From Macrostomum lignano (lineage: Eukaryota): 64,000 bases of DNA. The stretch lies in the NCBI GenBank assembly GCA_002269645.1, contig NIVC01000421.1, positions 1 through 64,000 of the forward strand, written 5' to 3'. The notes under the pieces were generated by a model that was not told where the DNA came from, did no database searches, and was given only the letters and a program-made list of their open reading frames with translations. This document shows positions 16,452 to 44,223 of this stretch, piece by piece (the stretch's first letter is position 1; each line of letters opens with the position of its first letter). The position numbers were made by a program, and so were the translations under genes.

Positions 16452-19400
16452 CTAGTAGGTAACGTCGTAATTTTCATGAAATTTGCGCGCTTTCGGGCAA
16501 AGCGTCACCAACGAATTTTGAACCTGCTGCAGCTGCTTGATGATGCTGATCTTAACTGTTGCAGTGCTCTCAGAATAGATGTTCATGCCTCGAAGAAAGT
16601 CATTTCGCTTTACTAGGTTATTTCTCGAGAGATTGTCTAAAGTGCATGGATCTTCCCGTGTCTCCTGTTTGCTTTGTTCAGCTGTTCCAGTACTGCCCTG
16701 TTTGTGCCTTGCCATACGGCAACTGACCAAGTGACGGTCGAACAGCTTCATCAGATATCGAGCGTAGCATCGAACTTCAGTGTCAGAGGGCGGACTATCT
16801 TCGGGAAACTCTCGATCCCACATCATCACAGCGATAGCTTTGAGGCTCCGATTTCGCTTTTCCTCCCATTCGGTTAATGGATCTAGTAAAAAAACAAATA
16901 CGTTGGTAAGATTACTTGCACATTCGTAAAATATAGCAATAGGTTGAAAAAGCACTATACTTGGGATATGTATACTCAATTAGTCAATTTTGAGTATTTT
17001 AAAAAATACAGCATTTTCATTGCATTTTCTCTACTTAAAATTGGAAGGTACAAGTAACCTAGCGTCATTAATCATTGTATTTATTAGGAAAAGCAATGAA
17101 AAAAAGACCAGCGCTTTCAACAGAAAATCTAAAAATACCGAAGGCTCAGACTAAGTTTTAACACAGGGCCCCATACACATAGTAGGACAGTTTCTTTAAA
17201 AAATTATACTAAAAAGCATGGGTTTGCTCACTAGCAAGCAAATTAAATATAATTTTCAAGCACAACAAAGGTGAAAAAACCTACCAGTCAGTACTTCAGT
17301 GAGAAGGTTTGAAGCACCCAAAGGAGAGGAACCGAAGTCTTGCAAGTAAAATAATGGCCTGTCTTTGTACAACGCAGTCTAAAATAGCGTAAAATCAGCA
17401 AATTAACTGAATGCACAAATGCGTGATTAAATAGCATGTAAAATATTACAGCACACATTAATTTAGTCCACAATTAATGTAAAAAATTAAGTAAAACACT
17501 TTTTTAGTATATGGAGATATCTACGAACCTTAAACTTTTGACTCAACTCATTCCATGACTCGAGATCTTCAGAGAATGAAGCACCATCGCGGTAGTTATT
17601 GGAAACTCGGTTTAGAAACTTTTGAAAGAACTGCACAATCTCTAAGCCTTTCCAAAGCCAAGGACTGGGTGATACGCCTTTCACTACCAAGCGCTTTTCC
17701 ACGCTTAAACACTTCTTAAGACAGAGAAGGCACTGCGTCTGTTGATCGTCTAACTGAGCGTGATATCGATACATATAGGCAAGAATTAAGTAGCAAAAAG
17801 CTGTTTTCACGTCGTTTGGACACAGTAGCTCGAGTATTCTGGCAGCCTGCCGAAACTTAAGAATGGCGCCACTTAAAGTGCCGTAGGGTGATTTAGTTGG
17901 GTCTCTAAATGCTTGAATAAATAGTTCAATGCCCACGTGCATGTGAATGAGAGCATAGAGCTCCGTATCAACCAGCTCCGCTCTTTGACACAAATCATAC
18001 GCTTGTTGAAGAATTTTCAGCTTGCCAACGTAATGCGCAACGGTTAAAACAACATCTAAATTGCATTCATCAGCGGGCTTCTCTTCAGTCTTATTAAATT
18101 CATAGGGTAGCACTTCCAGCAGATCCAAAAGTCCAGGGAAATTAACCTGAGCTTTATGCAAGCATAACATCAAGTCCGTAGCGGTCGAATCGACAGTAAC
18201 AATGCTTCGCCCGACGTCTTCTGAATGCTTATCGACGTCTTTCAGCAACAAAGTCACAGAATGAATAAGTTTATAATTAATTTCATAAATACTGTCCACG
18301 GAGAACATTCTATCCAGCTGGTAATAAGCGTTGGATAAATGTTCTTCTAGAAACACGAAAGCAATCCAATCAAGACCTTGTATGCTGGTCTTGTTTTTCT
18401 GGACAATTTCACTAACCCGATTTAAGGACTCAAAAGCCTCGAGCCAGGAGTTTTTCTGCGAAGCCAAGAAGCTCGTTACAACAGAACAAGCTCCTAAAAG
18501 ATACGACACAATCATTTTTCCGATCTGTTCTGACCATGAGTCCCTAAAGTCAGTTTTAACAAATGACGAAGCGTTCTTCTTCTGATGCTCCTCTGAGGCT
18601 TGCAGAATAAAAATAATGCCCTCGTTCACCAACCAAAGTGCAACTAGAAAGACCAGCATTTTGTGATCTTTGGAGAATTGCAACTCGAAGTCTTCATATG
18701 TAATTCTGGCTAAACGACAGAAATCCAGCTTTATACCGAATCCAATATCCAGTAGGTGTGCAGCCTTCTCTTGTTGATGTTTTGCAGAAGACAAAGCTTG
18801 AGTATTCAAATAATGGCGAGTAATGCAGAGAATGCAAAACACCCTGACAGGAATGTCTTCGATGTCCTCATACTTGCGTACTAACTTCTTTAAATATGCA
18901 AGCGATTCTAGTCGGTAGCCATCCAAAAAGTCTTTCGAGTCTTTGATCGTACGTATTATAGTCATCCATGCTGAGCCATCGCTTGAATCAACAGAAGACT
19001 CGAGATTGCTTTTCGGTACCATAGCAGCTTGGATATTTGAAGCGCTACGCACATTGGAGCTCTCATCAGCAGCCTGTGCTCGTACGCTCTTCTCTAAAAA
19101 TCTTCTTTTGATGGCTGAATTCTGAAGAATTTAAGGGAAAATGAAGTAGCATGTTACTAAGCAGGTGAATAAACATGAAGAAATGAAAATAACTATAAAA
19201 AGTATGCAAAACTTACGGCTCTGTCGTACAACTCCTTGCATTTTGCAGAGCTAGTCGAGTCAGAACGCAAATTAGCACCCACGTGAAGAAACTGCAACAA
19301 ATATGTTGCCGTCACTGTTCCCGACTCCAATGCACACTCCAAATCTACAGCTTTCTCAAAGTTCTCAAGAGCCTCTTCCGAAAACATGCCAACACTGTTG

Positions 19401-20706
19401 ACGAGAACTACAGACAGCATTGTGACAGCTGAAGCAGTGAGAGGATCACTTGCGTAGTTACTTCTCAAAACAGACGCGCTTTTCTCTAAGCATGACTTAG
19501 ATAATTCGTACTTCTCTTTCAAAAAATCTCGATTAAGAGCTTTACTGCTGCAATCAAGACCACTCTTCAACGGGCATGTGTCCTCAAAGTGGCTTACTCC
19601 TTCGACATAGTCGGCATAAGCTGTGAAGTAGGAGACAAAATCGACACTATTGTCTTTCAAGCGATTCAGAAGCCGCTTTCCTTGCTCAACCAGCGCCATA
19701 CACTTTTGCGGCAGACGCAACTCTAACAAACAAGCAGCCATGTTCAGAATGGAAGTGATGGACCACCCGTTAGGAATAATGTCTGAATCGATTCGTCGAA
19801 TTAAGCTGGCTTTCTGAGGTCGCCGCTCGATTGCCCCTTCGGAATATTGGAATGCCTTTACGAGGAACTTGTGCTCGTAAATTGTCTTCCTTTTAGCACA
19901 GTTAAACATCAGTCTGCTCATGGTTAGCCTCAAAGAGTTTGCAAGACAAGGGTCGACTGCGACTGCCTTCTGACTGAAGTACTGAGTCGCTAACCAATGG
20001 GCAAATTGGCAATAAGACAACCAATCTGGTTTTTTAGAAGTATCATCGTTCCAGAGTGCGATGTAGCATTTACCTGCAACGTAATGCGCAGTGACAAATG
20101 TTATTGCGCTCTCGAAGCCCTGTTTATCATTGGCTTCCTCTCTTTCTGATTGTCTTTTCTGGCTGGCTTTTGATCAGTGGTTTTTGCCACGCTGGAGTGA
20201 TTGTTCGTTGGTTGTATTTTGTTTTCATTCTCGGTTTCTTGTTTGCTTTGCTCATATTCAAAGTGCTCAGAAGAAATTTTATCAAGGAACTCACTGTACT
20301 GAGAGATCATAACCAATTTATGTTCGCTGGGTGTTTTTAGTTTTGGCTTATTAGCGGGTTGATCCACACTCTCTTGATTTTCGTCGTGTTTTTCTTTCTC
20401 TACTGCTCCAGACTTTGCTTCGTGACCACTGTTTTCCATCGCTGAGTAGAGTAATTTAAACGAGTCACCCAATAAACTCTCGAACTCTTTCAAAAAGCGC
20501 TCTGTTTGAGCATTATTTTGCCGAACTTGATACTCATTTATCAGCATTACAGTGGAAAGAGATTTCTCGAGGAGTCCAGCATCTTTTGAATGATGAACGC
20601 GGTTATACCTGTCTGTCCAGTACTGCAAGTTGAACGCATTCGCAAAATACTGAAGAAACGCAGCCTCTCCATCTTTAATCAATCCTTGATTTAGTTCAGA
20701 AGCCAT
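16452..20706 (-). CDS. TPR-like helical-repeat protein, paralog 1 (~1200 aa if one frameshift is corrected)
   Basis: Exons 20706-19217, 19121-17529, 17378-17285 and 16882-16452, with GT/AG sites and compatible phases. Exon 1 is 1 nt short of frame (shift near 20140-20170). TPR_12/kinesin-light-chain-like motif KFRQAARILELLCPNDVKTAFCYLILAYMY. Confidence 0.75.
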
Positions 20707-21515
20707 CAGCTTTGAAATAAGCTATGAAACCCCAAGTCGCCGATATAATTCTTGATCACGAATTGAACGTCACGAATTAAACGTGAAATCAGTCAGAGAC
20801 TGGTTTCAGAAATTTTTAAATAGAATTTTCATCGATAAACAAAAGCTGAAAGGAATATAAAGAATACGCCAGCTGTATGAAATATAATAAGCATCAAGCA
20901 GTCTCATAGGCAGTAATAAAGTAATTTCCCGTTGCCTATCAAAAAACGCTAGGTATTTCATTTGTAGTGCATCATTATTCATAAAATGCTACTGCATGTA
21001 AGTAGACTAATGCAAACATGCGCAGCAAAACTAAAATTGTGAATCAGGTTACTATTTATAACGAAACTATGAAGCATGTTACTAATTATAATGAGAAGCT
21101 GTATCGTGTTACTATTTATAACGAAAAGAGGAATCATGTTACTATCTACAGTATATCGAAAAGATGAATTATGTTACTAATTTATATTTCGCAAAAGCTG
21201 TGTATAAATACAAGTGAAAAATCCGAGCAAAAATCTCAGACTCAGAGCAACCTTAAAAGGACTTGAGAACATCCAAGAACTGCGAGGCTACATCTCTGTG
21301 AGAAGTAGATACCGTTCGATCGGAAAGCCCTGGTTGGAGCCTTTATTATTTTACTATTGAGAGCCTTGTTATTGCTGGCCGTTACTGATCAGTTGATTTT
21401 AGATTTTTTGAATTGGAGACCCCCTATTCCTAAGGGATTGGTCTACGGACCGATTCCGATACTCTTAGAGGATTATTGATTTGATTCATTTTGGTACCCT
21501 AGAGTAGGGGCACAC

Positions 21516-21518
<3 letters not shown>

Positions 21519-21558
<40 letters not shown>
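21519..21558. repeat. (TC)20 microsatellite flanked by the 8-bp inverted repeat GCACACTA/TAGTGTGC
   Basis: Direct reading. Confidence 0.92.
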
Positions 21559-21560
<2 letters not shown>

Positions 21561-23139: not shown

Positions 23140-26100
23140 TTAATAACCAACTTCATGATTTTCGTGGTAGTCCCTCGCTGCTGGGCAGTTTGACAACAAT
23201 AAATTATGAACTTCTTGCAGCCGATTAAGAATTTTAATCTTCTCCTGTGCGTTGCTCTGAGAATAAATATTAAGGCCTTGAAGGAAGTCGTTTCGCCTAA
23301 ACTCTCTGCTCTGTCCAAACGAATTTGGAAGCCTGCATTTACCGTATTTAGAGAAAAAGCAACTGTCGGAGTGACTGTTGAATAACTTCGTCAAGTATTG
23401 GGCGTAACAGCGGATCTCTGTGTCAGATGGCGGACTGGCGATAGGAAATTCACGATCCCGCATTATCACTGCGATTGCTTTCAGGTTGCGAGATCGTTTC
23501 TCCTCCCAATCGGTGAGTGGATCTGTGCACAAGTTTAAACAAAAACAACTTATTGTAATATTAGCGTCAGATGCGCACAGAACAGCAGTAAAATAGCAAC
23601 TTTTTACATTGGCTGGTTAGCTGCCTAAAAAGCGTTAATTAAATACTTTTGTTACGAGTTGCCCCGATCCAAGTCGGGGCGATAGATCTTATACACTAGA
23701 TAAGCCACTCCCCATAATGCATAGAAAATGACACCCAAATGACTCGGGGACGAAATGTTCGCTTGCACTGCTGAAAACGAATCGTCATCAGTAGTCTATG
23801 GACAGAAACGAATAAAAGATATATATTTATTCGCAATAAAATAACGCAGCTAAAATTTTTAGCACAGCAGACGCAAGCTACCTTCCCTCGCTTTGACTCT
23901 GTGTATTTTTTGTTGTTTCTGCCCTTTGTGTACTACTACCAGTATGCTTTACACATATTTAACTAACTCGCGGTCTGCATTGTTGCCTTCCGTATTGCTC
24001 ATTATAAGTCACGGGTTTCTTTAACTTTTATACACAGCATCCACATCTTTTCAAGTTCAATTTGCCTTATATCATTTACGTAATCGTTTAAGCCAACTTC
24101 TTTCAGTTTTCTTTAAAAAATACACTGCTGTCCAACAGCCTTCTGACACAAAAAAATGTATAGACGATTGATTTTTCTCAAACCGCACTCTGCTGATTAT
24201 ACGAGCAATATTGCATAGGTCGTGCAAACGCATCTCAAGTCTTACGCTGACACAGCTGAATAAAAAGGAAATTTAATACTCGTTTCAGCTACTGACAAAT
24301 ATACGCACTAACTACTGAAAACTAGCTGAAATCACCGCTTCTGGGAATGCTTGCCATAGACTCAATGATTTGGCTGGGTGCTACTGAGTGGCCTATCTAG
24401 TGTATATAAATCGATCTTAGGCTGGCCAAATCCAAGTCTGGGCTTGCTTTTCAAGGCCAGACTACCCTAGACTCAGCTTTCTACATACGGCCATTGGTGT
24501 TAAAACAAGATTGCATGTGTAATGAGCAGCTTAGCCGCTGATTAGAGCACATCAAAAGCTAAGCGACTATGTTGATTGTAATATTTCCAGACATTCTGTG
24601 CATCAATTAGGTTTGGATTTACAACAACTAAGAAACGGAACGGTTTAAGATCCGTTTAGACCTTTCTGATTCGTACGACTTGCTTGCATTTTTAAAAAGA
24701 TTCTGTTTAAATAAAACCCTAAAATAAACCGACCGATGGTAAACACCAACGCTAACATTTATGATTATGCAATTAGACCTAGGTATTATTTGCACGCTCT
24801 TCCATGTTAAGTAAAACTGATAGCAAGAGCAAATTTATCTATACTCGTCAAAGTTATAGAGGTTATTTCGCTTCGTTTTACTTTTTTCAGCAACAATAAC
24901 AGATAATACAGAATGGTCTTCAGTTATCTAAAATGATAAATTGAAAATTCGTATGTCTTAAAAAAATAAAATGACTGAGAGTCATAAGCTAAACTTACCC
25001 GTTAAAGATTCAACCAAAAGTACATAATTAGTAATAGGGAAGGCGCCAAAGTCACTCAAATAGTATATATTCTTCTTTCTGTTTACGGCAGTCTAAAATT
25101 CAATTTATATTAACAAAGATTCAGCTATTTTACAATGAGTAGAAACATGAAAAAGAAAAGTACGTAGCTTTGAAAATATTAATTACCAAGAACTTTCGAC
25201 TAAGTTCATTCCACGATTCCAGATCATCATAGAATGAATTACCGTCTCCGTAGTCCTCCGAAATTCGGGCGAAGTACTTTTGAAAAAATGAACGATCTGC
25301 AAGCCTTTCCAAAGCCAAGGACTGGGCGATGTGCCCTTCACTACCAAGCGCTTTTCTATGCTTAAACATTTCTCGAGACAGCGAATGCATTGCGTATGCT
25401 GATCATCTAGCTGCGAGTTATAACGATACATAATACTAAGCATTGTGTAGCAATAAGCCGTCTTGACATCGTATAGATCCAGTAGCTCAAAAATTCTGGC
25501 AGCCTGTCGGAATTTCAAAATCGCGCCATTTAAAGTGTTGTAAGGTGGTCTCTTTGGATTCCTGAAAGCTTGCTGATAGAGTTCGATGCCCACGTGCATG
25601 TGAATCAGAGCATAGAGCTGTGTGTCAACCAGCTCCGCTCTTTGGCACAGGTCATATGCTTGTTGAAGAATGCGAAGTTTATTCGGGTGGTCGCTTACTC
25701 CATAAATTACTTTCAAGTTAAATTTTATCTCGGGTTCTTCTTTGCTGGCTTTAAATTCGTAGGGCTGATCTTTCATCAACTGCAACAGATCTGGAAAGTT
25801 TACTTGAGCTTTATGCAGACAAATCATTAGATCCAATGTCGTGCCACTCAATGCAGAAGACTCGCTACTCACAAAAATACTTTCAGTGAAATCTTCAACG
25901 TCTTTTAGCAACTCAGTTACGCAGAACATTAACTTAGGATTAGTAAAAAATCTTTCTTCAACAGACACAATTTGGTCCAGCCGAAAGAATGCATTAGCTA
26001 GAAAATTTTCGATGACTACTAATGCTGTCCGCTCGCAGTCAACTATGTCAGATTTGATTGTTTCAACAAGACCCTTAGCGTGACTTAAACAATCCAGGGA

Positions 26101-28257
26101 TTTCATCCAAGTGGTCTTTTGAAATGTAAAAATTTTGAGCAGAATATTTCCAGTCCAAGATAAAAATGATGAAAGCGTTAAAAACACTTGCTCTGTCCTA
26201 GAAGGAATGTACCTGGCTGGATATAATTCTGAAGCGCGCATTTTCTGATGCTCCTCTGAGGCTTGCAGAATAAAAATAATGCCTTCGTTCACCAACCAAA
26301 GTGCAACTAGGAAGACCAACATTTTGTGATCTTTGGGGAAACTCAACTCGAAGTCTTCATATGTAATTCTGGCTAAACGACAGACATCCAGCTTTATACC
26401 GAATCCAATATCCAGTAGGTGTGCAGCCTTCTCTTGTTGATGTTTTGCAGAAGACAAAGCTTGAGTATTCAAATAATGGCGAGTAATGCAGAGAATGCAA
26501 AACACCCTGACCGGAATATCTTCGATGTCCTCATACTTGCGTACTAACTTCTTTAAATGCGCAAGCGATTCTAGTCGGTAGCCATCCAAAAAGTCTTTAG
26601 AGTCTTTGATTCTACGTATTATAGTCATCCATGCTGAGCCATCGCTTAAATCAACAGAAGACTCGAGATTGCTTTTCGGTACCATAGCAGCTTGGAGACT
26701 TGAAGCGCTACGCACATTCGAGCGCTCAACTTTAGGCTGTGTTCGTACGCTCTTCTCTAAAAATCTTCTTTTGATGGCTGAATTCTGAAGAATTTAATGG
26801 AAAATGAAGTAGCATGTTACTAAGCAGGTGAATAAACACAAAGTAATGAAAATAACTATTAAAAGTTATGCAAAACTTACAGCTCTGTCGTACAACTCCT
26901 TGCACTTTGCAGAGCTAGTCGAGTCAGAACTCGAATTAGCACCAACGTGAAGAATCTGCAACAAATATGTTGCCGTCACTGTTCCCGACTCCAATGCACA
27001 CTCCAAATGTACAGCTTTCTCAAAGTTCTGAAGAGCCTCTTCCGAAAACGCACCAGCACTATTGACGAGAACTACAGACAGCATTGTGACAGCTGAAGCA
27101 GTGAGAGGATCACTTGTGTAGCCACTTATCAGAACAGAAACGCTTTTCTTTAAACATGACTTAGATAATTCGTACTTCTTTTTCAAAAAATCTCGATTAA
27201 GAGCTTTACTGCTGCAATCAAGTCCGCTCTTCAACGGGCATGTGTCCTCAAAGTGGCTTACTCCTTCGACATAGTCGGCGTAAGCTTTGAAGTACTTGTA
27301 GAGCTTGGTTGATTTCGACAAATCAAAGCGCTTCAGTATCTGCTTTCCTTGTTCAATTAGAACGCGACATTTCTGTGGCAAACGCAACTCTAACAAACAA
27401 GCAGCCATGTTCAGAATGGAAGTGATGGACCACCCGTTAGGAATAATGTCTGAATCGATTCGTCGAATTAAGCTTGCCTTCTGAGGTCGCCGCTCGATTG
27501 CTGCCTCAAAGTACTGGAACGCTTTCACAAGGTACTTGTGTTCGTAAATAGTTTTTTTCATAGCGCAGTTGAACATCAGTCTGCTCATGGTTAACCTCAA
27601 AGAGTTTGCAAGACAAGGGTCGACTGCGACTGCCTTCTGACTGAAGTACTGAGTCGCCAACCAATGGGCAAATCGGCAATAAGACATCCAATCTGGTTTC
27701 TCAAAAGTATTATTGCGCCCAAGTGCAATGTAGCATTTTCCCGCAACGTAATGTGCAGTGATGAATGTTATTGCGCTCTCAAAGTCCTGTCTGTCAGTTG
27801 CCTCATGAAGCTTAGGCTGATTAGCCTCTTCAATTGGGTACTTGTCTGTAAGCGCTTCGGTTTTTAGTTTACTTTGCTCATTTCGAAAGTTCCGGGCAAC
27901 GAGTGCATCCAAATACAATTGGTAAATTGCCATCGTTTGGTATTTACTTCGTCCTTCATCCCCATTCTTGCTCCTAGATTCAATAGCCGCTTTAAGTATT
28001 TCAGAAGAATCAGAATCCGCAAAAATGTTTTCCAAAAAATTCACGTAATAGGTTGTTTTGCTAGTATTTTGTCTTATTTGAAATTCATTTAAAAGCATAA
28101 CGGTTGAAAGAGACAAATCCAAGGCCCTGGAATCCAACCGGCTTAGAGCTTGCTTGTGTCTTTCTTCCCAATATTTTAAAGTCCCGTCATTTGCATAAAC
28201 TTGAAGAAATAGTGCGTCGTCGTCGGAAATAAGTCGATTGCTCGACATAGTAGACAT
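23140..28257 (-). CDS. TPR-like helical-repeat protein, paralog 2 (~1150 aa if one frameshift is corrected)
   Basis: Exons 28257-26881, 26784-25187, 25092-24999 and 23522-23140. A 1-nt deficit falls in a T-run near 25280. Clearly homologous to paralog 1. Confidence 0.78.
23694..24402. mobile_element. Non-autonomous TIR element (709 bp) with CACTAG termini in intron 3 of paralog 2
   Basis: TIRs CACTAGATAAGCCACTC / GAGTGGCCTATCTAGTG (16/17 match), TA on both flanks, and internal GTCTATGG/CCATAGAC subterminal motifs. Confidence 0.82.
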
Positions 28258-28785
28258 GTAAAAAAGAATTTAGTAGACTGGTGTGAACAAAGTTCTTTAA
28301 CAGACTGAAAGTGGGTAATATTTTTTACAAACAAATGATTCCAAATAGACAAGTCTACATTAAGTATTTTCACCAAAGCAAGATTAACAGTAATGTTGAG
28401 TACCAACCACAGATACTAGAATAACTACGAGATGGGCCACTCAGGCATATATACTTAGCAAAATAGCTTTTTACTTTCAGTTCAGTAGCAATGAACAATA
28501 CAAACAGTATTTTATACGAATAAAGGCAGCTGCATGAGATGACTTTGATAAGTTTAGAAGCCAAGCTTGCAGACGTAAACAGCTTGCTAATTATAACAGT
28601 TTAGCTATAATGTACATTAGCCACTGAAATTTACAAGGCATATTTAGGCTGGAACAACCGAAGAAGGTATTAAAAATTGGGTGTCGGGGCAGGAGTAGAG
28701 GTTCTGTGAACATGTGTGGAGTCAATAAAGAAGGCATGTATACTTAGCAAAGAGCCAATAAATAAGCATTGTCTTTAAAAATATA

Positions 28786-29877
28786 CTCAGCAACGGGTCC
28801 ATGAGAATTGCCGCAGACGAATTTCCCGCAGTGCATTTTTCCCGCGAGCGAATTGCCCGCCGAGTTTTTCCCGCCGAGGTTTGCCCGCAATGCTTTTTCC
28901 TGCGGCGCATTTCGCAGCTAGATTCTGTCTCCGATGCCCCCCCCCCCAAAAAAAAATGTACATGAGATATGCAGTTACTCTCAAAACGTTACTCTTTATT
29001 GACTTACTAAGCATTGGGGAGGCAATGCAGACAAAATCTGCCGCGTGGCCAAATGCGCTGTAGGAAAAAAGCATTGCGGGCAAGCATCGGCGGGCAATTC
29101 ACTCGCGGGCAATTCACTCGCGGGCAATTCACTCGCGGGCAATTCACTCGCGGGCAATTCACTCGCGGGCAATTCACTCGCGGGCAATTCACTCGCGGGC
29201 AATTCACTCGCGGGAAATTCACTCGCGGGCAATTCACTCGCGGGAAATTCACTCGCGGGCAATTCACTCGCGGGAAATTCACTCGCGGGCAATTCACTCG
29301 CGGGAAATTCACTCGCGGGCAATTCACTCGCGGGAAATTCACTCGCGGGCAATTCACTCGCGGGAAATTCACTCGCGGGAAATTCACTCGCGGGCAATTC
29401 ACTCGCGGGAAATTCACTCGCGGGCAATTCACTCGCGGGAAATTCACTCGCGGGCAAATCTCGGCGGGCAAATCTCGGCGGGCAAATCTCGGCGGGCAAA
29501 TCTCCACAAGCAATTCGCTCACGGGCAAAATGCACTGCGGGCAAATCTCGGCGGGAAAAGCTCGGCGGGCAATTCGTCTGCTGGCATTTCTCGTGCTCCC
29601 CTCAGCAACATCGAAAAGTCGCCATCACAGAAGATTCCGTCTGTGGTCGCCAATTTTGAAAGTGCAGGTCAAGTTTCTCAATCTTTGCGAGTGACGCGAC
29701 TTAGGTACGCCGCGGCAGACTTGGGTTGAGGTTTGAGGAATGAAGTCGGGGGGAGCGGTATGTGAGGATTGGACGGATTAAAGCGACCCCGATCAGTTTT
29801 TAGTTTTTTAATTTCAGAATAGTCCAAGAGAAATTGCTCACTGGCGCATAAAGTGGCGACTTTTCAACGTTGCTGTG
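28786..29877. mobile_element. TA-TSD MITE (Tc1/mariner-like), interrupted by a MULE-like insertion
   Basis: TIR CTCAGCAAC-ATCGAAAAGTCGCCA / TGGCGACTTTTCAACGTTGCTGTG, flanked by TA. A sister copy lies at 30006-30286. Confidence 0.72.
28795..29600. mobile_element. Mutator/MULE-like MITE with a 15-bp minisatellite expansion
   Basis: 9-bp TSD CTCAGCAAC (28786-28794, 29601-29609), GGG...CCC termini and long imperfect TIRs. (CGCGGG(C/A)AATTCACT)~24 lies at ~29090-29457. Confidence 0.85.
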
Positions 29878-31584: not shown

Positions 31585-32489
31585 TGTAGTGATCCGCTAG
31601 TTTGGTGTTAGGCGTCGCAATATTGTCAGCAGCTTCCTTCGCCCTCGCCCCCGCCCAGGGTTGCTGTCTGCCGCTGGTCAGCTTCCCGCCCTTCTGTTGC
31701 TGTCCTTCTGCGTCTCTGTTCTCAGCCCTCAGCTTTTCTGCTGTAGGCTGTCTCTGTTTCGTTCCCGTCCCGTTTTCCTCTGTCTTGTGAGCAAGTCACA
31801 TGACAGATCTTGTGTTCTTGGAGTCTTAAAGTGCAGTAAACATGTTTACTGCACTCGTTGGCCCTGTTTACCGGGAGAATCACGTGCTTTCGGACCCCTC
31901 CCTTCTCTAAGGAGAGGAGTGACTCATGTTGCTAAAAATAGCAACTGAGTCACAGCCGCGTGTACTCTGACCGGAAACCTCAAGTGACGTCAGTTCTAAA
32001 AATAGAACAAGTCACGAGGTCTTGTGCGTGGGTGTTTCCCGGCTATAAATAGGACCCCTCTTCCCTTGTTTCCGTCAAGGAGGCTTCTTATCTGCGGAGA
32101 ATCCACTAAGTTCCCGTGTGCGTCAGTGTCTAACTAAGTGCCCTTTGCGCATATTGAATCTGCTTGTACTGGTCTGACTGAGACCCCACTAAAGCCCAAC
32201 CTTAAGCCTACGAGAGGCTAACTCAGCCCTCCCATACCAACCAAGCCCGGCAGGTGCTGCTGACGAGACGCCTTGTACGTTGAACTGCAAATCTGCACCC
32301 GGTGCTGAGTTCGTTGACTTCGTTATTTTGTTCCGACGGGAAGCTCACCTCATCGAAGGCCGAGACCTGAAGGAACTGGTGGCAGCACTACCTACGCTAC
32401 TGAGAGTTGAGAGAACTTCCCACTGAAGAGGCTCGAGTCTTAAGGTAATCTCAAGTGCCTAACCGGGAAGCAAACAGCGTTCTACTTCA
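31585..32489 (+). mobile_element. Solo LTR (905 bp), probably Gypsy-type
   Basis: TG...CA ends, 4-bp TSD CATA (31581-31584, 32490-32493) and TATAAAT at 32044. Homologous to 34427-35463. Confidence 0.85.
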
Positions 32490-33182
32490 CATATTTTGAT
32501 GCGAGCTCATACTATGCTGGGACAGACCAGCAAATGAAAACGTCTGGGACAGACAGAAAATGAAAACGAGACGAAAAATACTTTGTCTATGGCAGTCACG
32601 AGCTAATAGGAAAGAACGGGGGGAAAGGGATGTCAAAAGTTAAGATCGAGCGAGATAAAAACAACTGGCTCAGATCAGCACTCCATTCCATTCCTTCCTC
32701 CATGGTCTGGACATGACATCGCGGCCACGACACCCACCAGCCAATCATAGCACAGAGCCCGAGAATCAGAGGGAACGCCAATCGCAAACCAGACTTGAGC
32801 CAACTGGCTGAGGCAGATACAAAGGGTTGGTTTACATAAAATAGGGGGAATGAGAAGCGTGGGGTGACTCAGAACGTCTGGAGTACGGAGTGCACTTGCA
32901 CTGCAAGAGTGCGCGACACAACACTCATATTTAAAGAAAAAAATAGCTTAGTAGTAGCGAGTATTTGTTTGTATTCAACATTGCCTTGCGGATTACAGGA
33001 CCCTAATTCAGCCTAAATGATTTATCAGAGTAATAATACGAGCGTATATTCCGAAATAGTCGCAAAATAATATAGTTCAGAACGTGTACGTGATTGTGTT
33101 TTTTAAATGGCAAAATATCATGCAGGTCAGTAAAAACTATACGTTTAAATGTGTACGGAATGACGAGAGGCTAAATGGTCAT

Positions 33183-36100
33183 TTAGTAGGCAACCTCGTA
33201 CGTGTCGTGACAGCGAATAGCTTGCTGACATTTAGTCAGCAGCAGATTGTGGTTCCGCTGCAAACGCTTCAGAATTCGACTCTTATCTTCGGCGTTGCTT
33301 GTCGAATACGCGCTCAAGCCTTCCAAAAAATGATTGCGCAGAACTTCGTCGGGACTGCCTTCCAGGTTGTCAAGCGGACAACGTTTCTCGGGCTCTAACT
33401 TCTGCGGCACGGGGCAAAAGTGCCAGTGACGATTAAACAGTTTCGTTAGGTATTGCGCGTAGCAACGGACTTCCGTGTCCGAAGGTGGACTGTCTTTGGG
33501 AAACTCGCGGTCCCACATCATCACGGCGATTGCCTTTAGACTTCGGTTTCGCTTTTCCTCCCATTCTTCAAGTGGATCTGGGCACGAGTACGGATTATAT
33601 TAAGGAGTGATTACTACAATCTGTTTTGAAGAGTTGAAGGTTCGTTTGCACCATCAAACAAGTAAACAAATCACATCCTTGATTTATAACGCAACAAAGA
33701 CACATACAATCCCTGCGGTCAATCCTATTCTGTCATATATGCATACAATACTATTTAATGGTGTGAACAAGCCTCTAGGATGAAAGGTCAATACAAAGAC
33801 CTAAACGCTTGACTCAGTTGTAATAAAAAGCTAACTATAACATATATTAGCATTAATGATGGCATCATGCCTTGTTTTTATCTATAAAAACAAGAGTGTC
33901 GTTTTACTCATCGGTTACTTGTATTTTTCAAGTGCGAGATTTCAGATAAAAATAAATTAATCATCAAAAATCACATTTTTACCTTACAACTTTGCCCCAC
34001 TAAAGTTTTGAAATCTTACCAAAAAGAGAATCGGCCAGCAACGATGGGTCCGGATGGTGTTCATTTGAGGCTGGTAGCATTGCGCAATACGGCACGTCTC
34101 GCTTTACGGCGGTCTGTATTTAGGAATTGTAATTTCCTTTGTTAGCTTTAGAAACGGTTAAAGACCCCAAAAACATGAAAATAATATACACTGAAAGTGC
34201 CTATCGTATTACTTGACCCTAATGGGCCTGAATAATTGGTTCTATTAAAACCTGTGCAAAAACTCCGGGTTTGTATTTCCGCAAGCGGAATCAAACATAC
34301 GGCCTTTCGAGTAGAATTCGACGCATATCGCGTCTATTTCAATTTTTATATTTATTATTTATCAATACATTTAACAGACAATTGTGTACACTAGTGACTC
34401 TATAAATTTAAAGCGAAATTTATGTGTGTAGTGATCCGCTAGTTGGTGTTAGGCGTCGCAATTTGTCAGCAGTCGCCCTTGCCTTCGCCCTCGCCCTGGG
34501 TTGCTGTCTGCCGCTGGTCAGCTTCCCGCCTCCCTCCTTTTGTCTGTCTGTTGCTGCTCCCTTTCCTCGTTTTGCCCGTTTTGCCCCTTCGTTTCTCAGC
34601 CCTCAGCTTCTCTGCTGTGGGCTGTCGCTGTTTCGTCAGTCTTGGTTTCCTGCCATGTGAGCTAGTCACATGACAGATCTCTCGTTCTTGGAGTCCTAAA
34701 GTGCAGTAAACAAGTTTACTGCACTCGCTGGTCCTGTTTACTGAGTGAGTCACGTGCTTTCGGTCCCCTCCCTTCTCTAAGGAGAGGAGTGATTCATGTT
34801 GCTAAAAATAGCAACTGAGTCACAGCCGCGTTTACTTCTGCCCGGAGACCCCAAGTGACGTCAGTTCTAAAAATAGAACGAATCACGAGGTCTTGAGCGC
34901 ATTGGGACTGTGCCCGAAGGCCATGAGTGACGTCAGTTCTAAAAATAGAACGAGTCACGAGATCTTGTGCAATGGGACAGAGGTGAATCCCGCGCTATAA
35001 ATAGGACCCCTCTCCCCCTTGTTTCCGTCAAGGAGTTTTCAGTTATCAGTATTTTTAGCCGAGTTCCTGAGATTCTGACTATTCGTCTTCGGAATCTTCT
35101 TATTGTCTAGTTTTCCGGACTTCGTTCAGTTGCCCATTTAAGCTATCACCAATTGGCCTGACTAAAACTTAGACGCCCAAGCCTAAGGGAGGCTAACACT
35201 GCCTTCCCAGCCACCGCTGAGCCCGGCGGGGATCTGCTGATCAGGACGCCTTGTTCATTAATCTGCAAATCTGCACTCTGTGCTGAGTTCGTTGACTTGT
35301 TTATTTCGTTCCGACGGGAAGCTCACCTCACCGAAGGCCGAGACCTGAAGGAACTGGTGGCAGCACTACCTACGCTACTAAGAGCTAATAGAAGGCTTCC
35401 GGTTGAAAGGACGGAGAGCCCCAAATCACTGTGCTAGACAGCAGGAGAAGCACAGGTACAACATGTGATATACTCGTAGCTTGGTGAAAATAAAACTAAA
35501 TATTCAGTAAAAAATGAAAACGTCAACAAATAAAAATAAAAGCACACAGGAAGCTCTACCTGAATTTTTTTGAAAAGATGCGTCCACTGGTCCGTCTCTG
35601 AGAGAAAGCGGTACTTTTTATCAGCAGACATCGATAACTGCTTGAAATAGGCCTTTCCATCGCGAATGACTTCAAGACACTTCCACACCCACGGGCTGGG
35701 GCCGGAATCTTTCGCAACCAGACGTGTTTCAATATTAGAACACTTCTCAAGACAACTGAGGCATCTCGACTCCTGATCTTCCAACTGAACTTGATGGCAG
35801 TAGAGCAAGCTCAAAATGGCATAGCAACGGACAGTTCTAGCGTCGTCTCCATACAACTGTTCAAAAATCCTGGCAGCCTTTCTAAGTTTTAAAATGGCTG
35901 CATTAAAATTACTGTAATGCGGCTTAAATGGGTCCATGTAAGCTTGCCTCATAAGTTCTACGCCAGCTTCAAAATGCACTTGAGCGTGGAGTTCTGTATC
36001 GAATAGATCAGTCTGATGGCACATGTCATATGCGCGCTGTAGACTTTTAAGCTTTTCTCGCGTATTGCTAACTGTTAAAATGACTTCCAAGTCTTGAAAT

Positions 36101-38449
36101 TTGCCCAGAGTTCTAAGACCAGCTTTGTTCATTGGCAAGCGCTTCATGTATCGGCTAAGAGAAGGCATGTTAATTGCCGTTGAGTGTAAATAGTGAAGCA
36201 AATCTTCAGCTGTTGTCTCTTCTGCTTTGGGCGTCTTTTGTCTCAGGTCGTCGGCGTCTTTAAGAAATCAACGACTGCGAAAACTAGCTGAGGATCATTC
36301 TTGTACCTGTCATCGAAAGCAAGGAAGTCGTTTAAATGAAAGAACGCATCAGCCATATAGCGAGACAAAAATGAAAACGCTGGCTTCTCGTTATCTTCGA
36401 GGCTTAGCTTCAAACTTTGAAAAATGCGCTTCGCGCGCCCAATTGTATTGCGAGAATCTGTCCACTTCACCTTCGCCTTGCTTCTCTTATCGGCGATTTT
36501 CTGACGAACTAGCACAGCGACCTGCGAAATGCTTGTAAGATTGCGATCACGAGGGAAATCGATCATTTTTTTCACCTTCGATGCTGATTCCTTCTGACTA
36601 AGGACCGAAGCCTCACCAAGAATTAGCATACCCTTGTTAATAAGCCAGAAGGAAACAAGAAATGACAATTCCTTGTGATTAAATAGACGCTGCCCATTCA
36701 GTCTGCTGGCATCTAGATCAACCGTGGAATCCAGATCAATGCCAAAAATATTTCGTATCAGCCGAGTAGATTTCTTATGCCTGCTTTCAGCCTTATTCAA
36801 ATACTGCGACTGCCTGTGATGACGACAAATGAAAAGGTTGCAGAGAATTTGAGTTGCGATTTCGGTGTCCTTTGAGCACAATTTTAGGAGCTTCTTGAAG
36901 TGGGCCAAGCTAGCTTGTCTATGGGCATCCAAATAGCGCCTGGATTTATCAATGATGATAAAAATGTCACTCGTATCATTTAGTTCGATGTCAAGTCCGG
37001 AGCTTGGTTCCGTAATCTTACTCGATTCACCTGTATTCGGGTTCGATTCTGCTTTACGATTTTCCTGCTGTACGGCAGTAGCGCTTCGTCGTGCACTAAA
37101 AAGTGCTTCCTGTAATTATAAATATGAGATTTTGGCTACAAGATCATAGAAACCAGGAACTTAAGTAATTAATGTTAGCGTAGGAGCATTTCAAAAAAAC
37201 TCACAGCTCTATTGAACAGCTCTGTACAAATCGATGTGGCCGGTTTCATGGAGACACTGGTACGTAGCATTTGATACAAAAATGTCGCCGTCAGTGTGCG
37301 AGTCTCATGCTTGCTCTCAAAATCCAGAGCTTCTTTAAAACTGACCAAAACTTCTGTTGTGAAATCAGCAGCCTCGTTTGCAGAAACAACAGCCAGCATT
37401 GTCAAAGCAGATGCCGTCAATGGAGCATCTGGGTGACTCTCCCTCAGTACAGAAGCGTTTTGTTTTAGAAGTTTAATAGAAGTTTGGTATTTTTTCTTCA
37501 GGTGAGATGCACTAAAATGATTGTTTGCATTGCTTCCATTTAGCGAGCTTTTGATAGGACTTGTCTCTTCAAAATGGCTTACGCCATCGATGTAGTTAGC
37601 GTAGGCCTCCGAAAAGCTTAAATCTTTTACAGAAGATTTAATCAGTTTTCGTGCTTGCTCAATTAGGGCTCGGCACTTCGTTAAATTGCGCAATTCTAAG
37701 AAGCAAGCCGCCATGTTAAGAATAGCAACAACTGACTGCTCGCTAGGTATAATCTCTGTGTCCATTCGACGAGTCAAACTCTTTTTCTGAATATTTCGCT
37801 CGATCATGCCTTCAAAGTACTGAAAAGACTTTACAAGGAAGTGATATTCAAATATATCCTTTCTCACGGCACAGTTGAACATGAGCCTGGCCATAGTAAT
37901 TCTCATGCAATTAGAAATGCGAGTATCGGATAAGCCTTGACTTCTCAAATGCTGGCCGGCTAACCAGTGAGCCAGCTTGCTCCAGGAGATGCAATCCCAA
38001 CTAGAGGAATCGTCCTGCAACAGTGCAATGTTTCCTTTACCTGCAACATACAATGTAGTGAGAAACAAAAGCGAGTTTTCGTATCCGATCATATCGTCCT
38101 TCATTTGCTGATAATCAATTTTTTTACAGGGAAGATAACGAGAAAACAGCTTCTCCTTGTATTCTTGATAGCCCAGCGATCTGTCGGAAACATCGTTGCC
38201 ATAAATGGCCCGCTGCAATTCATCTAAGGCCTTCTCTCCGACAAGGTCCTCGAAAAAGCTTAGAATATTATTCGACTCGGTGAACTGTTCATGAATCTGG
38301 TACTGGTTGCTTAGCAGAACTAGGGCGAATCCTTGCGCGAGAGCATCGGAATTCTTCGCTACAGAAGTTTTCCAACGTGCATGCCAGTAATCGATCAGCT
38401 TTTGACTGGGAAAAATGCTGATAAATGTGTCGAGCGAGCCAGGATCCAT
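33183..38449 (-). CDS. TPR-like helical-repeat protein, paralog 3 (~1094 aa if one frameshift is corrected)
   Basis: Exons 38449-37205, 37109-35560, 34113-34020 and 33577-33183. A 1-nt deficit falls in an A-run near 36260 (restores LKDADDL, cf. LKDVDKH/LKDVEDF). A solo LTR sits in intron 2. Confidence 0.75.
34427..35463 (+). mobile_element. Solo LTR (1037 bp), same family, in intron 2 of paralog 3
   Basis: TG...CA ends, 4-bp TSD TGTG (34423-34426, 35464-35467), TATAAAT at 34996 and a duplicated TGACGTCA-containing segment. Confidence 0.87.
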
Positions 38450-39625
38450 TGCTGGCTTACTTTGGAAATTGTAGCTTCAATTAGTTACTTGCAACGACGA
38501 ACAAGTGTTTCTGAATGCGGAACTGAAATGAAAAAGAAGTTCTAATTTTTATACTAATGCTAATCTATTTAACGCGAAAATTTACGAAGAGACTCGTATA
38601 ATTTATAAAATTTGCAATGTTTTGGTAGTAATACATTCATAACCTAAAAAGTGCTAATGATATTTAAAACACCCTAAAAGGAATCGGGAAAAGATATAAT
38701 TTTATTTATATTAATTGGTATAGCATATTTAGGTATTGATATAGTCTTAACACCGAAAGCACTCACACTAAGAAAAATTGTGACAAAAGATGTACTTGTT
38801 TAAGACGAAAATTTATTTGTTAAAGCTTTAGAACGGGGAACATAGCAGCTGCATACAAAAAGGCACATCAGCTGATGATTTGAAGAACAAGCTTTTAAAC
38901 GGTAAAAACCGATTAGAGGTTAGTTAAAAATTTAACAACCGTTTAAGTGACAACAAAAATGGAAATAAATTCTATAAGTTTGGAATACATGTCACTAAAT
39001 AAATGATTTAAGCTTATATTTTTTTCAACATTTATTGCTTATAACAATATTTACTATAGATACAATTCCTCCATCTCACTTTGTCAGTTAGGAGCAATAA
39101 GAAACAGAAAAACTCGTAAGAGTATAACCCTTCTAAATCTGATTCCTAAGTACACCAGGACTTCTGTTTAAAATAACTCGTATTTAAAACAGCATTTATT
39201 ACTCAAACCAAGTTTTCAGTAATTAAAAATTTAGTGCATATACCTTCTACTTTAGATATAAATGTTTGATTTTATTCTAGGTCCAGTAACGAAACCTGAC
39301 AAAAATCAAAGAATATATGAGAATCGCTAGAAAAGGAACCTAATAAAATGAGTTTCATTTAAATATCTTTGCGATCAAAATTCGGGAAAAGCAAATATTA
39401 CAAAAGTGGTAATAGAAAACTTTTTTGATTTTTGAATGATTTTACGACAAAAGTTCAACTCAAATAAAACTAAAATGTAAAACAGTATCAAAATAACAGC
39501 AGAGGGATCACAGCTGGCTCAAAAAAGTGTAAATGAGTCGATAAAGTTGGGGGCTTTAGTTTTTTTGGCTAAACAATATAAATTCAATATACACAAAAAG
39601 ATGCGTGGTTTTTATACAAATTGAT

Positions 39626-42600
39626 TTATTCGGACATCGGGGCTAGATTTAATTTACTATCACAAAGAAACTCTTGAATCTTTGCGCAGCACAGCATCCG
39701 CCTGTGATTCTCTTGCAGCATTAGAAACGTAGCCTCCCTTTTCTCTGTCCGTTGAACCGTGTACTCATTTAAGCCGGCAAGAAAGTCTTTCGTTCTCGGA
39801 TGGATCCAGCATTTGAATAGAGGACAGCTATAATCTTGTCCCGGCATTCGAGCCCGAAAAGGAATCAAGGGCTTCTTCATAAAATGAATCAATCGAGAAT
39901 CGTCGCTAGATTCCTTTGGTGCGCACTCTCTTTTGTGATGATTCCACATGAGCTGCAGATAACGCGCGTAGCAGCGAATCTCCGTCTCTGTAGGCAGGCT
40001 GTTGCTGGGATAGACCATGTCGAGCAGCTGCTGCGACGTTTCAGCAAGGTAAGATTCGTCCGCGTCGAAAAGAGGGTCTAAAAGTTTCAATAAAAAATAA
40101 CTTTGTGCAGTATTACCATATTATCTTTTTAAGACTAGCAGGTATTGTTGCGAACGTACGATTGCAATAAAGGTAGCAATAATACAATCTACAGCAAAAT
40201 TATTATAAATGATGCTTTTCTCAAAGCAATCATCGTCATTGCTCCTTAATAGAAAAGCATCTCATTGGCAGGCACCATCAAGGTAAAACACGAGCGCGAA
40301 ACTTAATTCGTATCGTCAATTGGAACTATAATGGGCTAATCATTAGCCAAAAATACCAGTACGAGGACGAAAACTTTTCCAAATAGAACCCCAAGAGATA
40401 CAAAATGAAACATTATGCGAATGGAAGATTTTATTGTTCGTGCGCCATACAAGCACCATGCTAAGTAAAGACAAGATCCATCTTTAGAGAAGTAAAAATG
40501 GGGGCGGTTAAAACAATTTAACTTACTTTGCTGCTAAAGACACTTTTTTGTTGTTAGAACTCCTGTTAAATTAAATAGAAGCAATATTAAGACAGTTTCG
40601 TGTCAAACATCATAGCTAACTTTTACTGTCACATGCAGTATTCAAGAGCTGCTTCGATCTAGTTTAAAACTTACCAGAAATTTCCCAAAATACTGGCGCC
40701 TTCGGTACTAGAGACTCTTTCCAATCATCTTCGGTCAATAAAGTCTGAAGGTTTCGGTCCCTGATCATCTACAAAATGTTTTAACACACATAACTAGTGT
40801 ATTGCTTTTTTTGTTGATAGCTAAATAAATTTGAATAAAAATAATAAACTGTGAATTTTGCACTTCAACTCACCTCGAGGTGCTTCGTGATTACGTCCCA
40901 CTTTGGAAAATGCTTTGAATGGGAACCAAGAAACAAGTAGCGACACTTCCTAACCACTTCGATCGTCTTCCACAACCAAGGACTCGACATACAATCGTTT
41001 TGTAACAAAGACACTTCAAGTCTGAGACACTCAGAAAATGCTTCTAGTGCTCGATGCTCTTGATCTTCAAGCTGCCTTTGGTTAAAGTACAGTACAGCGA
41101 TCATTCCCTGAGCCATAGCTGCACCGACATGGTCACCGCATATTGTGTCAAATATTTGGGCAGCCTGGCGAAACTTGAAAATGGCGGCGTTAAACTCATT
41201 GAACGCAGGCTTACTAACTGTGGCGCAGGCATTCGAATAAAGGAACATTCCCACAGAAATGTGCAGTGACGCGTGTACCTCTGTATCAACGAGGCCGGCG
41301 GCGGCGCACAAATCGTAGGCTAGTTGAAAGCGATGAAGTCGAAAATCTGGCATACCGAATAGAGTCTTGCAATTTCTGGGCGCATCGGAAAAGTTTCCCA
41401 GAGCAGTGAGGCACATAACAGCCAATGAGGAAGGCAGAACATGACCTTCAGGACTTGATAGATTCTGCTGCAACACTCTAAACAACTCGTCGCAAGACCT
41501 TCTCCTGACGGACGCTGAAAAGTCTTGATTGTCCTTAATTTTGTCGCACATGCGATAAGCCAACTCTCCAACGTAGATTCGTAAGAAAGAAACAAACTCA
41601 GACTGTCCCATACTTGGATCCTCGCTCAGTTCAGAGCAAATCAATGTCGCGTGCTCGTTAAGCGCTCTGCACTGGCGCCAGGTTTGGTCTAATAATCGAA
41701 AATGATTTGAAGAAAAGAAAATCTTCAGGAAGGCAACCGTAGTAACCAACTTTGAGGATTTATTATCCTTAGTGTGCAACGTTGGAGAAAAAAGCTTCAA
41801 ATTTCGAGCCACCACTTTCAACAAACACAGTTCCGCTTCGTTAGCAATCCAGAAGCCACAGATCAGAGCGATAGCAGGTCCCATTTCGTGATGATCAGAA
41901 ACCAACCGTTTAAGAGTGATAGATTGGTAGCTTTCTAACGACAGCTCTATTCCAAAGTACATAGACACAAGTCTAGATACCTTAGCCTGGCGACACTCAA
42001 CCTTTCCTTTCGCACAAGCATAGATGTAGTATTTAGCGATGAACAAATGACAGAGCAATCCTGCCACGTAGCTATTAGTTTCTTTGCATCGTCTCAGTCG
42101 ATCTTTAAAATATTCAAGACCTTCTTTTCTGTAGCAGTCGAGGTATTCGCGAACTAAGTCAAGAGGTGTCTCAATCTGTGAAATAACCACATCAGATATT
42201 GTTTTAGGAACCGGTTTATCTGAAAAAAACATTATTGCACAATACGATTTTATAGCTAGAAGTTAAACTACGCTAAGCCATGATTTAGTTACTGAGCAAA
42301 AACCCCACCTTCACAACTCGTATTTCCTTCCTTCGTTTCGCGCTCCCTCGCGCCCGCATACTTTTGACAGTCAACCTTTATAGAAACTTCCAAATGGCAT
42401 TTCTGAAAAAGGGCATTCGGATATTTAGTACACAGGAAAACAACAGCTGAATAAAGCGCAAGGAAACTACTTAAAACCCATATTTAATTTAATTTTAATC
42501 TGTGATTAATGATACTCTGCATGGATGAAAAGCGCGTTGACAATGATCCGATTAAGCTACTACCGGTAAAAGTGTTATATATACGTATTGAAATTATCGC

Positions 42601-44223
42601 ATGGATGCAAACATGACCATAGCTTTTAATTTCTACTTTGAGACGGGATGTCTACAGTATAATTGAAGCCTCAGAAGCAGAATTCACAAACCCAACTTAA
42701 TTGACAAAGGGGTGGAGCGTGAGCTTAGAGTACAGTAGGTTACATAGTGACGACAAAACGAGTTGGCAACATAAAATTCAAAGTTTTTGTTAGCGTTTGT
42801 CTTATTTGCTTTTTAAAAGACGAGCTACACTTCCACTAAAGTCCATAAAGCGTTGGATGGAAACGAACCATATGAAGCAAAGATCACGAGTAAACATAAA
42901 ATCTGAAAGCGTAAGCAAAGCATTGCAAGAGATAATAAAAGAAGCTATATTGCTCACCAAAGCTTGTTGATAAACTTCATTCCATTCATTCTGATCTTGT
43001 TTCGAGCTAACAGAGTCAGCGCCTATTCGCAGAATCTGCAGCAAGCTCCGCATCGAAGCGGTAGGCTGGCGAATTTCGCACTCCAAGTCTGTTGCCTTGC
43101 TTAGATCACACAGAGCATCGCTGCTAAAGTCAGCCAGCATATTGGCGCGAACGATTCCGCGTACAGTGTAGACGGAAGCCAACAACGACGATTTAGGCGC
43201 GCATTCTTCTAACTCGTGGGCACTTTCGTCCAAACTAAGCTTGGCCTCAGTGTATCTGTCTTGAAGAAACTGCTTATAGGCCTCGGGTCTTCGAATTGCT
43301 ATTCGCTGAGGATTAGTGTCTTCAAATAAGCAAACACCTCGTATATAATCAGCGTAGGCTTTCAAGTAGCGTTCATCACTTGTTCTTGCGGCTCTGGGGA
43401 ACAGTTTCTTGCGAAACAAGTCAAGAAGAATATTTGCTCGAACGGTCTGTCGCAGCTCTAGAAGACAAGCAGCCATACTAATTATACCGGTGATTGTAAA
43501 CTCGCTCGCCACAATATCTTTGTCAGTCTTTCGCATCAACAGCTTCCGCGTAGTGACAGGCCGCTTGACTTCCTCTTTGCGCTCGATCATCGCTTCAAAC
43601 CACTTGAATGCTAGGCGAAAATTTTGATAATTACAGACTTCCTTGAGTTTTGCAACATTAAAGAACATTACTCCAGCAGCTTTTCGTAATAACATTTTTA
43701 TCCAATTATCGATTAGATGTTGTCTACTAGGAGACAAGTGCCAAGTGACAACACTTCGAGCAATGGCGCATTTCTTTGGCCATTCATCTGTGGACTGCCT
43801 TAAAGAAACAAGAGCTTCGTTAACACAGAGCAGCCCGCTTAGTATTGCCAAGCACTCGTGCATCAGAACCGAGTCTTCCTGCCCAATAGAAGTCGTAAGC
43901 GATTCAAGTCTTTTGTAAGCAGTCTCGATAGCCGAAACATCACATTCTTCTTTACTGCCTTCACTAATACTTGACAAAAAAGCCTTACTAAACTTTGAGT
44001 CCATGAGCTCGCCATGTGATGTAGTAACCGAGGAAGAAGTTAGCTCTAGGTGAGCTAATATAACTTTTCTTGCAACTTGAACCAACCCCATTGAGCAGTA
44101 GCCATCGCTGCAACTGCTGCACTGGCAGCCGCCAGATTTAGTTTTGTCGACTTTCCAAAAATCGATAGCCTCCTTGGTCGGTTGGAAATGCAGACCGTCT
44201 GAGCCAAGAGCGGATAAAAACAT
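39626..44223 (-). CDS. TPR-like helical-repeat protein, paralog 4 (~1083 aa, intact frame, most diverged)
   Basis: Exons 44223-42958, 42402-42309 (predicted, less certain), 42219-40874, 40768-40675 and 40077-39626 total 3252 nt in frame. Shares the motifs FKWFEAMIER, MAACLLELR, KFRQAAQIFDTICGDH, QLEDQ and TEIRCYARYL with the other paralogs. Confidence 0.78.

Follow-up and report, generated by a model that had tools for sequence, protein, structure and literature searches.

What kind of system is encoded by a row of very large, diverged genes on one strand of a flatworm contig, and is it a rapidly evolving recognition locus? The question is raised by positions 16452-44223 of a 64,000-nucleotide stretch (hereafter the window), which corresponds to bases 1-64000 of contig NIVC01000421.1 of the Macrostomum lignano assembly GCA_002269645.1 (Mlig_3_7). 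Its composition (~40% G+C) is eukaryotic and its closest database proteins lead to the same species. Four paralogous genes, D, C, B and A, all lie on the minus strand of this interval, downstream of the gene for DNA topoisomerase I (Top1), and are already carried by GenBank as hypothetical proteins (Table 1). An earlier sequence-only reading had taken them for a candidate recognition system under diversifying selection. We propose instead, with moderate confidence, that D-C-B-A belong to a tandem array with seven or more members, encoding a family, so far known from M. lignano only, of helical proteins that resemble tetratricopeptide repeat (TPR) proteins and are likely scaffolds or adaptors under purifying selection.

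Gene models and extent of the array

Gene models were built from six-frame lists of open reading frames (ORFs) together with a three-frame reading of the minus strand, and every junction was read. Four collinear sets of long open blocks were found in the interval, and no further family fragments are present in the window beyond these four genes. In A-D every junction follows GT-AG, and each gene carries a 94-nt penultimate exon that starts in phase 0 and ends in phase 1, followed by a last exon of 383-452 nt. The alignment of the four proteins runs end to end, and the conserved blocks picked out in the sequence-only reading (FN.A, FE..IER, MAAC.LELR, AYA.Y..GV..FE.T.P, K.R.AA.I, QL.DQ and CYA.YL) all proved to be invariant columns of this four-way alignment. 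Since the exon/phase plan is shared and the invariant motifs sit in an end-to-end alignment, the observation of four paralogs is real and far beyond chance. The common plan that had been described for them needs one correction, namely that D has five exons and not four. An extra 94-nt exon between its two large exons adds 31 residues that are present in GenBank protein P0013, and the spliced translation of the five-exon model equals P0013 exactly; a +1 frame correction at the start of D exon 2 was rejected on these grounds.

The raw translations of C and B correspond to GenBank proteins P0002 and P0004, respectively, and the GenBank model of A (P0003, 940 aa) starts at an internal methionine and is contained in the present model. 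Protein P0011 was considered as a B/A hybrid arising from unequal crossing-over and rejected: its 11.5-kb range opens where B starts and closes where A ends, the contig holds both genes, and P0011 is a chimeric gene model. The ML2-assembly model P0001, for its part, is a wrong fusion of Top1 with D and C.

Parts of the locus also occur on four other contigs of GCA_002269645.1, at 95-99.8% identity. Near-identical copies of this kind are to be expected in M. lignano, a neopolyploid whose genome comprises three subgenomes (PMC10733133). Beyond A, the homeologous contigs L002 and L004 carry two further types of paralog, E (P0015, 1178 aa) and F. Furthermore, a 470-aa ORF on L004 (20279-21688, plus strand), located after F, is exon 1 of a seventh type, G, and shares 32% identity with F and 30% with C; G is missing among the annotated proteins of the exhaustive search described below and is thus probably unannotated. 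The tandem array of four reported earlier therefore holds for the window, but four is a lower bound: we infer the order Top1-D-C-B-A-E-F-G, with at least seven members. In pairwise comparison the paralog types share 24-39% of their amino acids. C shares 39% with A, 39% with B and 27% with D, and A and B share 66%.

The GenBank models derive from a genome-guided transcriptome, in which spliced-leader and poly(A) sites served to divide transcriptional units into genes and clustered transcripts share a prefix (PMC5730564). There is therefore RNA support for all four genes. C, B and A share the prefix Mlig017162 (g1-g3) though they are far below the 95% clustering threshold, and this naming suggests that they were cut from a single precursor transcript. 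These three genes would be co-transcribed as such a precursor and resolved by spliced-leader trans-splicing.

Relatives and domain content

A profile of the four proteins was run with HMMER against every one of 1.84 billion (1.84e9) representative proteins. In this exhaustive search strong hits were limited to eight proteins of M. lignano; a further, weak hit was a spurious repeat protein. The latter, the metagenome protein P0010 (E 1.8e-6), was rejected as a homolog, being a bacterial repeat protein whose unit matches one stretch of the profile eight times. A word-indexed protein search recovered two proteins only, with either a single sequence or a nine-sequence profile, and the exhaustive search is the informative one. 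A sequence profile search of the PDB gave no match at E up to 1. The literature, searched with the locus tags and with Macrostomum plus tetratricopeptide, offered nothing relevant, and the tags are absent from the supplements of PMC5730564. As far as these searches reach, the family appears so far to be found only in M. lignano and to be uncharacterised, in agreement with the lineage specificity claimed earlier.

Among Pfam profiles, TPR_12 (PF13424, clan CL0020) matches C with 30.7 bits against a cut-off of 30.1, that is, by a margin of 0.6 bits. No TPR profile rises above the Pfam cut-off in A, B, D, E or F, the best being TPR_14 on E (E 0.02). Below the cut-off there are faint matches to NCH2 (E 0.05, on D), TPR_8, TPR_10 and TPR_14. 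The tail encoded by the last exon has no Pfam match even at E up to 10. No paralog matches Pfam profiles for NACHT, NB-ARC or a Walker A P-loop (E up to 1 for A-C, up to 10 for D-F), and the Pfam search of the paralogs revealed no effector or immune-signalling domain (NACHT, TIR, Death, CHAT or protease), with Peptidase_C50 and CHAT still unmatched at E up to 10. A signal peptide or an enzymatic domain is likewise not recognisable in these proteins. Together with the models presented below, the Pfam results bear out the earlier description of TPR-like proteins of cytosolic appearance, devoid of a P-loop, signal peptide or catalytic domain.

Predicted structure

AlphaFold2 was run on C with nine family sequences. 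The full-length model is all-helical and of moderate confidence, with ~45 helices of 10-30 residues and a mean predicted local distance difference test score (pLDDT) of 58.6. Residues 11-420 mostly score 70-90, and low-confidence stretches are found at 423-520, 582-631, 709-767 and 936-976. When modelled alone, the C-terminal third is purely helical with a mean pLDDT of 71.8 and a disordered stretch at 172-208. Compared with the PDB by Foldseek, the full model retrieves the TPR superhelices CTR9, SKI3/TTC37 and IFT-A and, lower in the list, separase, with E values down to 1.5e-6 and TM-scores of 0.1-0.2. The C-terminal third retrieves HAP40, NASP (sNASP), KLC1-TPR, alpha-SNAP and LGN, all with E >0.01 and TM-score <=0.5. 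For the modelled protein, the Foldseek result supports a TPR-like helical solenoid as the fold class, and nothing more specific.

More conserved positions tend to be modelled with higher confidence (Spearman 0.36, p 1e-4). Several of the variable segments that the sequence-only reading had found impossible to align (~421-460, 591-630, 701-760 and 905-960 of C) coincide with low-confidence, linker-like parts of the model, which does not favour a recognition role, although the variable N-terminus (1-180) is confidently helical. The last-exon tail, ~130 aa long, is conserved and predicted to be helical, and contains invariant C, H, C, C and C positions (C-x11-H-x3-C ... C ... C). These Cys and His residues may bind metal.

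The CTR9 (PAF1 complex), SKI3/TTC37 and IFT-A TPR subunits are like the present proteins in their ~900-1300 aa and all-helical stacked hairpins (Foldseek E 1.5e-6 to 1e-3). However, they share no sequence similarity with the family in the PDB profile search and superimpose only at the low TM-scores given above; they are single-copy, pan-eukaryotic complex subunits, whereas the present family is multi-copy and belongs to one lineage. Proteins of the TPR_12 type (kinesin light chain, or KLC, LGN/Pins and NASP) are resembled by residues ~810-900 of C (A.ILK.R.AA.I.E.. ...Y..L..LY) and by C 317-355. On the other hand, only one of the four paralogs reaches the Pfam cut-off, and the Foldseek matches of this type have E >0.01; KLC1-TPR, for instance, is a Foldseek match only, at E 0.039. 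Kinesin light chain consists of an N-terminal heptad-repeat coiled coil and six TPR_12 repeats and has Metazoa-wide orthology, whereas the exhaustive profile search gave the present family no homolog outside M. lignano. Its proteins have neither the KLC heptad-repeat region nor GoLoco motifs, are far longer and end in an unrelated tail domain.

Frame breaks: assembly errors or decay

The sequence-only reading of four genes missed frame-breaking indels in three of them. Judging by exon lengths, exon 1 of A and exon 2 of both B and C each lack a single base that would keep the frame open; D is intact. The GenBank proteins of C (703 aa) and B (991 aa) are the spliced models translated up to the break, and that of A is the part after it. 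Between the window and L003, C shows a single 1-nt difference, at position 2087 of the coding sequence (CDS); it is intact on L003 (1094 aa), and P0001, from the older ML2 assembly, reads DFLKDADD in frame. B is intact on L002 (1150 aa); L003 also has one base more than the window B at the CDS position of the T6 run, and in P0012 the frame continues through HFFQKYF. At the site of the window's lesion, A on L002 has 4 nt more and keeps its frame; ~110 nt further along the CDS (L002:12105-12166) it carries a 7-nt insertion of its own, which breaks AGKCY/IALW. Moreover, E on L002 contains a premature stop (L002:18259-18263, ILFSC-stop-MQQG; P0015 has G), which is not in the L004 copy. These lesions of E and A on L002 are independent disabling lesions in another subgenome copy.

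The assembly was made with Canu on PacBio reads and polished with Pilon (PMC5730564), which makes errors of assembly a possible source of the one-base homopolymer lesions in B and C; those in A have more the look of true mutations. The frame breaks of the window could represent residual PacBio homopolymer errors in B and C, or early decay of redundant neopolyploid copies in A, as in E on L002. The exons of Top1 are without frameshift and are too short to calibrate the indel rate of the assembly.

It could be argued that the window copies are mostly pseudogenes, that is, redundant duplicates decaying after a recent whole-genome duplication and non-functional on this chromosome. The three frame breaks agree with this, as do the nature of the A lesion, a 4-nt indel and no simple homopolymer slip, the independent insertion and stop on L002, the truncated copies of A on L004 and of B on L003, and the presence of three subgenomes in M. 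lignano. However, the lesions of B and C are single-base deletions in T7 and A4 runs and plausibly residual PacBio errors of a Pilon-polished Canu assembly, in which reads may mis-map between copies that are 97-99% identical (PMC5730564). Besides, D is intact, pN/pS between copies is 0.2-0.4 and not ~1, and RNA-based gene models exist for all four genes. On balance, we consider general decay unlikely.

Divergence and selection

Synonymous sites are saturated between the paralogs, except in one tract shared by A and B, which includes intron 1 (Table 1). In most of this tract the synonymous divergence (dS) is 0.05-0.36, and elsewhere it goes from 0.5 to saturation. The low dS, together with the high identity of the two arms, points to gene conversion or to a younger shared segment. 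The paralogs are old duplicates, with saturated dS and conserved gene structure. Between A and B, the ratio of nonsynonymous to synonymous divergence (dN/dS) is 0.32 overall and 0.08-0.3 in the conserved blocks. Between subgenome copies it amounts to 0.43 (B), 0.31 (A) and 0.28 (C). When the subgenome copies were pooled and split by family conservation, the pN/pS ratio came to 0.22 for conserved blocks as against 0.38 for variable segments. Selection between these copies is therefore purifying and not diversifying. Indeed, dN/dS is below 1 wherever it is measurable, and diversifying selection was not seen at the depths tested (paralogs and subgenome copies). The earlier claim of rapid, diversifying evolution is not upheld: the paralogs are ancient, their structure is kept and, as far as can be tested here, dN/dS is low, an outcome that the sequence-only reading had itself named as speaking against it.

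These values also bear on the wider proposal of that reading, in which the array would be a rapidly diversifying set of cytosolic sensors or effectors (innate immunity, allorecognition or toxin-antidote), with the variable segments as recognition surfaces. A tandem array of repeat-fold proteins in one lineage only would suit such a role, and so would the structural differences from copy to copy between subgenomes, the A/B gene conversion and the somewhat higher pN/pS of the variable segments. A shared TPR-like region, a lineage-specific tandem expansion and the faint NCH2 match on D moreover recall NLR/STAND proteins with TPR sensor arms (NACHT-TPR). However, the present family has no NACHT/NB-ARC P-loop module and evolves under purifying selection; neither TIR, Death, CHAT nor any other effector domain was found, several variable segments overlap linker-like stretches of low pLDDT, repeat number is invariant, and ancient paralogs with saturated dS and a conserved exon structure do not fit rapid diversification. 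An immune or allorecognition role is left unsupported, given the missing immune-type signalling domain and dN/dS below 1, and we regard the sensor/effector proposal as improbable.

Proposed scaffolds or adaptors, and remaining alternatives

The reading that we prefer is that of protein-protein interaction scaffolds or adaptors. The proteins, ~1050-1200 aa long, are predicted to be built almost wholly of TPR-type helix-turn-helix hairpins, followed by the conserved helical tail. Partners would be bound along the helical groove, as in TPR solenoids generally; the conserved blocks would correspond to the hairpins and several variable segments to linkers, and the paralogs could have diverged in partner specificity. 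Several points weigh against this. The term scaffold would be a generic one, drawn by analogy with the fold class. The TPR assignment consists of one borderline Pfam match and of Foldseek TM-scores that lie at 0.1-0.2 with the full model and do not exceed 0.5 with its C-terminal part, the AlphaFold alignments are shallow (6-9 paralogs), and about one third of the full model has a pLDDT below 50. In addition, three of the four copies here are untranslatable at full length as assembled, and a pN/pS of 0.2-0.4 exceeds that of typical housekeeping genes.

A more elaborate scheme would make the array a set of flatworm-specific, paralog-specific adaptors, in which the TPR solenoid reads ligands or partners and the Cys/His tail serves as a new metal-binding output module, the whole forming a sensing or conflict system complete in itself, with an immune, germline or allorecognition role. 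If true, it would have no counterpart in other animals and would maybe rely on trans-spliced polycistronic expression; we hold it to be quite improbable. A relationship to separase and CHAT-type caspase-like proteases, or to the cohesin loader SCC4/MAU2, is hardly credible: the automatic UniProt names 'Separase' (P0016/P0017), 'CHAT domain-containing protein' (P0008) and 'Cohesin loading complex subunit SCC4 homolog' (P0009), and the presence of human separase in the Foldseek list (E ~2e-3), are in its favour, but these names were rejected since they label nothing more than fragments of types E and F that contain no additional domain, Pfam gives no Peptidase_C50 or CHAT match, the C-terminal part is predicted to be all-helical and not of the alpha/beta caspase fold, and the separase TM-scores (0.10-0.18) are at the level of many other helical solenoids.

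To return to the scaffold or adaptor reading, the array is a real but ordinary-looking orphan family in an old tandem arrangement. M. lignano serves as a model in the study of regeneration and reproduction, and the present results document a lineage-restricted family of seven very large proteins, which databases label as hypothetical or mislabel as separase, CHAT or SCC4. The corrected gene models are useful for annotation, and the differences between copies across three subgenomes are shown. No long-standing question is opened by the family, and the idea of a recognition system is so far without support.

Genomic context and repeats

Table 1. Coordinates of the array, its exons, frame breaks and associated features in the window
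Feature	Position	Strand	Description
Gene A (BOX15_Mlig017162g3)	16452..20706	-	four exons; ~1202 aa with frame restored
A exons	20706-19217, 19121-17529, 17378-17285 (94 nt), 16882-16452	-	
A exon 1 frame break	20154..20162	-	gap of 4 nt against the L002 copy; A/G-rich, low-complexity sequence
A/B high-identity tract, A arm	18568..20137	-	90.6% identical over 1577 bp to the B arm, intron 1 included
Gene B (BOX15_Mlig017162g2)	23140..28257	-	four exons; 1150 aa with one base restored; assembled stop after 991 aa
B exons	28257-26881, 26784-25187, 25092-24999 (94 nt), 23522-23140	-	
B exon 2 frame break	25283..25288	-	T6 run (HFF/QKYF); T7 in L002
A/B high-identity tract, B arm	26231..27804	-	partner of A 18568-20137
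Gene C (BOX15_Mlig017162g1)	33183..38449	-	four exons; 1094 aa with one base restored; assembled stop after 703 aa
C exons	38449-37205, 37109-35560, 34113-34020 (94 nt), 33577-33183	-	
C exon 2 frame break	36259..36261	-	AAA run (DFLK/DADD); one base more in other copies (A4)
Dispersed repeat, ~1 kb	34427..35400	.	inside C intron 2; not in the L003 copy
Gene D (BOX15_Mlig008703g2)	39626..44223	-	1083 aa, intact, five exons
D exons	44223-42958, 42402-42309 (extra 94-nt exon), 42219-40874, 40768-40675 (94 nt), 40077-39626	-	
DNA topoisomerase I (Top1)	47279-54597	-	directly upstream of D, same strand

The sequence-only reading had likened the locus to tandem arrays rich in transposable elements. 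Inside the array such richness is only weakly borne out: it contains a single dispersed repeat of ~1 kb and a single tandem array with a 15-bp unit, and no transposase or reverse-transcriptase ORF was found there. The dispersed repeat lies in C intron 2, and its absence from L003 indicates a copy-specific insertion or deletion. A related copy is located at 31585-32420, in the B-C spacer, which also contains the 15-bp tandem repeat (29 copies, 29090-29528).

Downstream of A, collinearity of the window with the other subgenome copies ends at 15402. Similar breaks occur on L003 from 13141 onward, inside B intron 2, and on L004 at 1-1445, inside A exon 2; these three breaks are rearrangements, large insertions or assembly joins. 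Below 15402 come low-complexity arrays and an ORF of 653 aa, and the contig begins with a 5-kb satellite. The satellite (4-4980) has a 183/368-bp unit in ~27 copies of 88-91% identity. The ORF (8653-10614, minus strand) is intact, has no Pfam match and displays an acidic N-terminus and a Cys-rich motif, GHTSYVGCQYC; it may be a transposase-like gene. Long perfect micro- and minisatellites with units of 18, 21 and 24 bp, at 11608-12758, 14095-14519 and 61250-61888, give rise to spurious low-complexity ORFs on both strands. Finally, the introns of Top1 contain long minisatellites at 47647-48420 (23-bp unit), 49184-50590 (38/57/95-bp) and 53074-53779 (27-bp).

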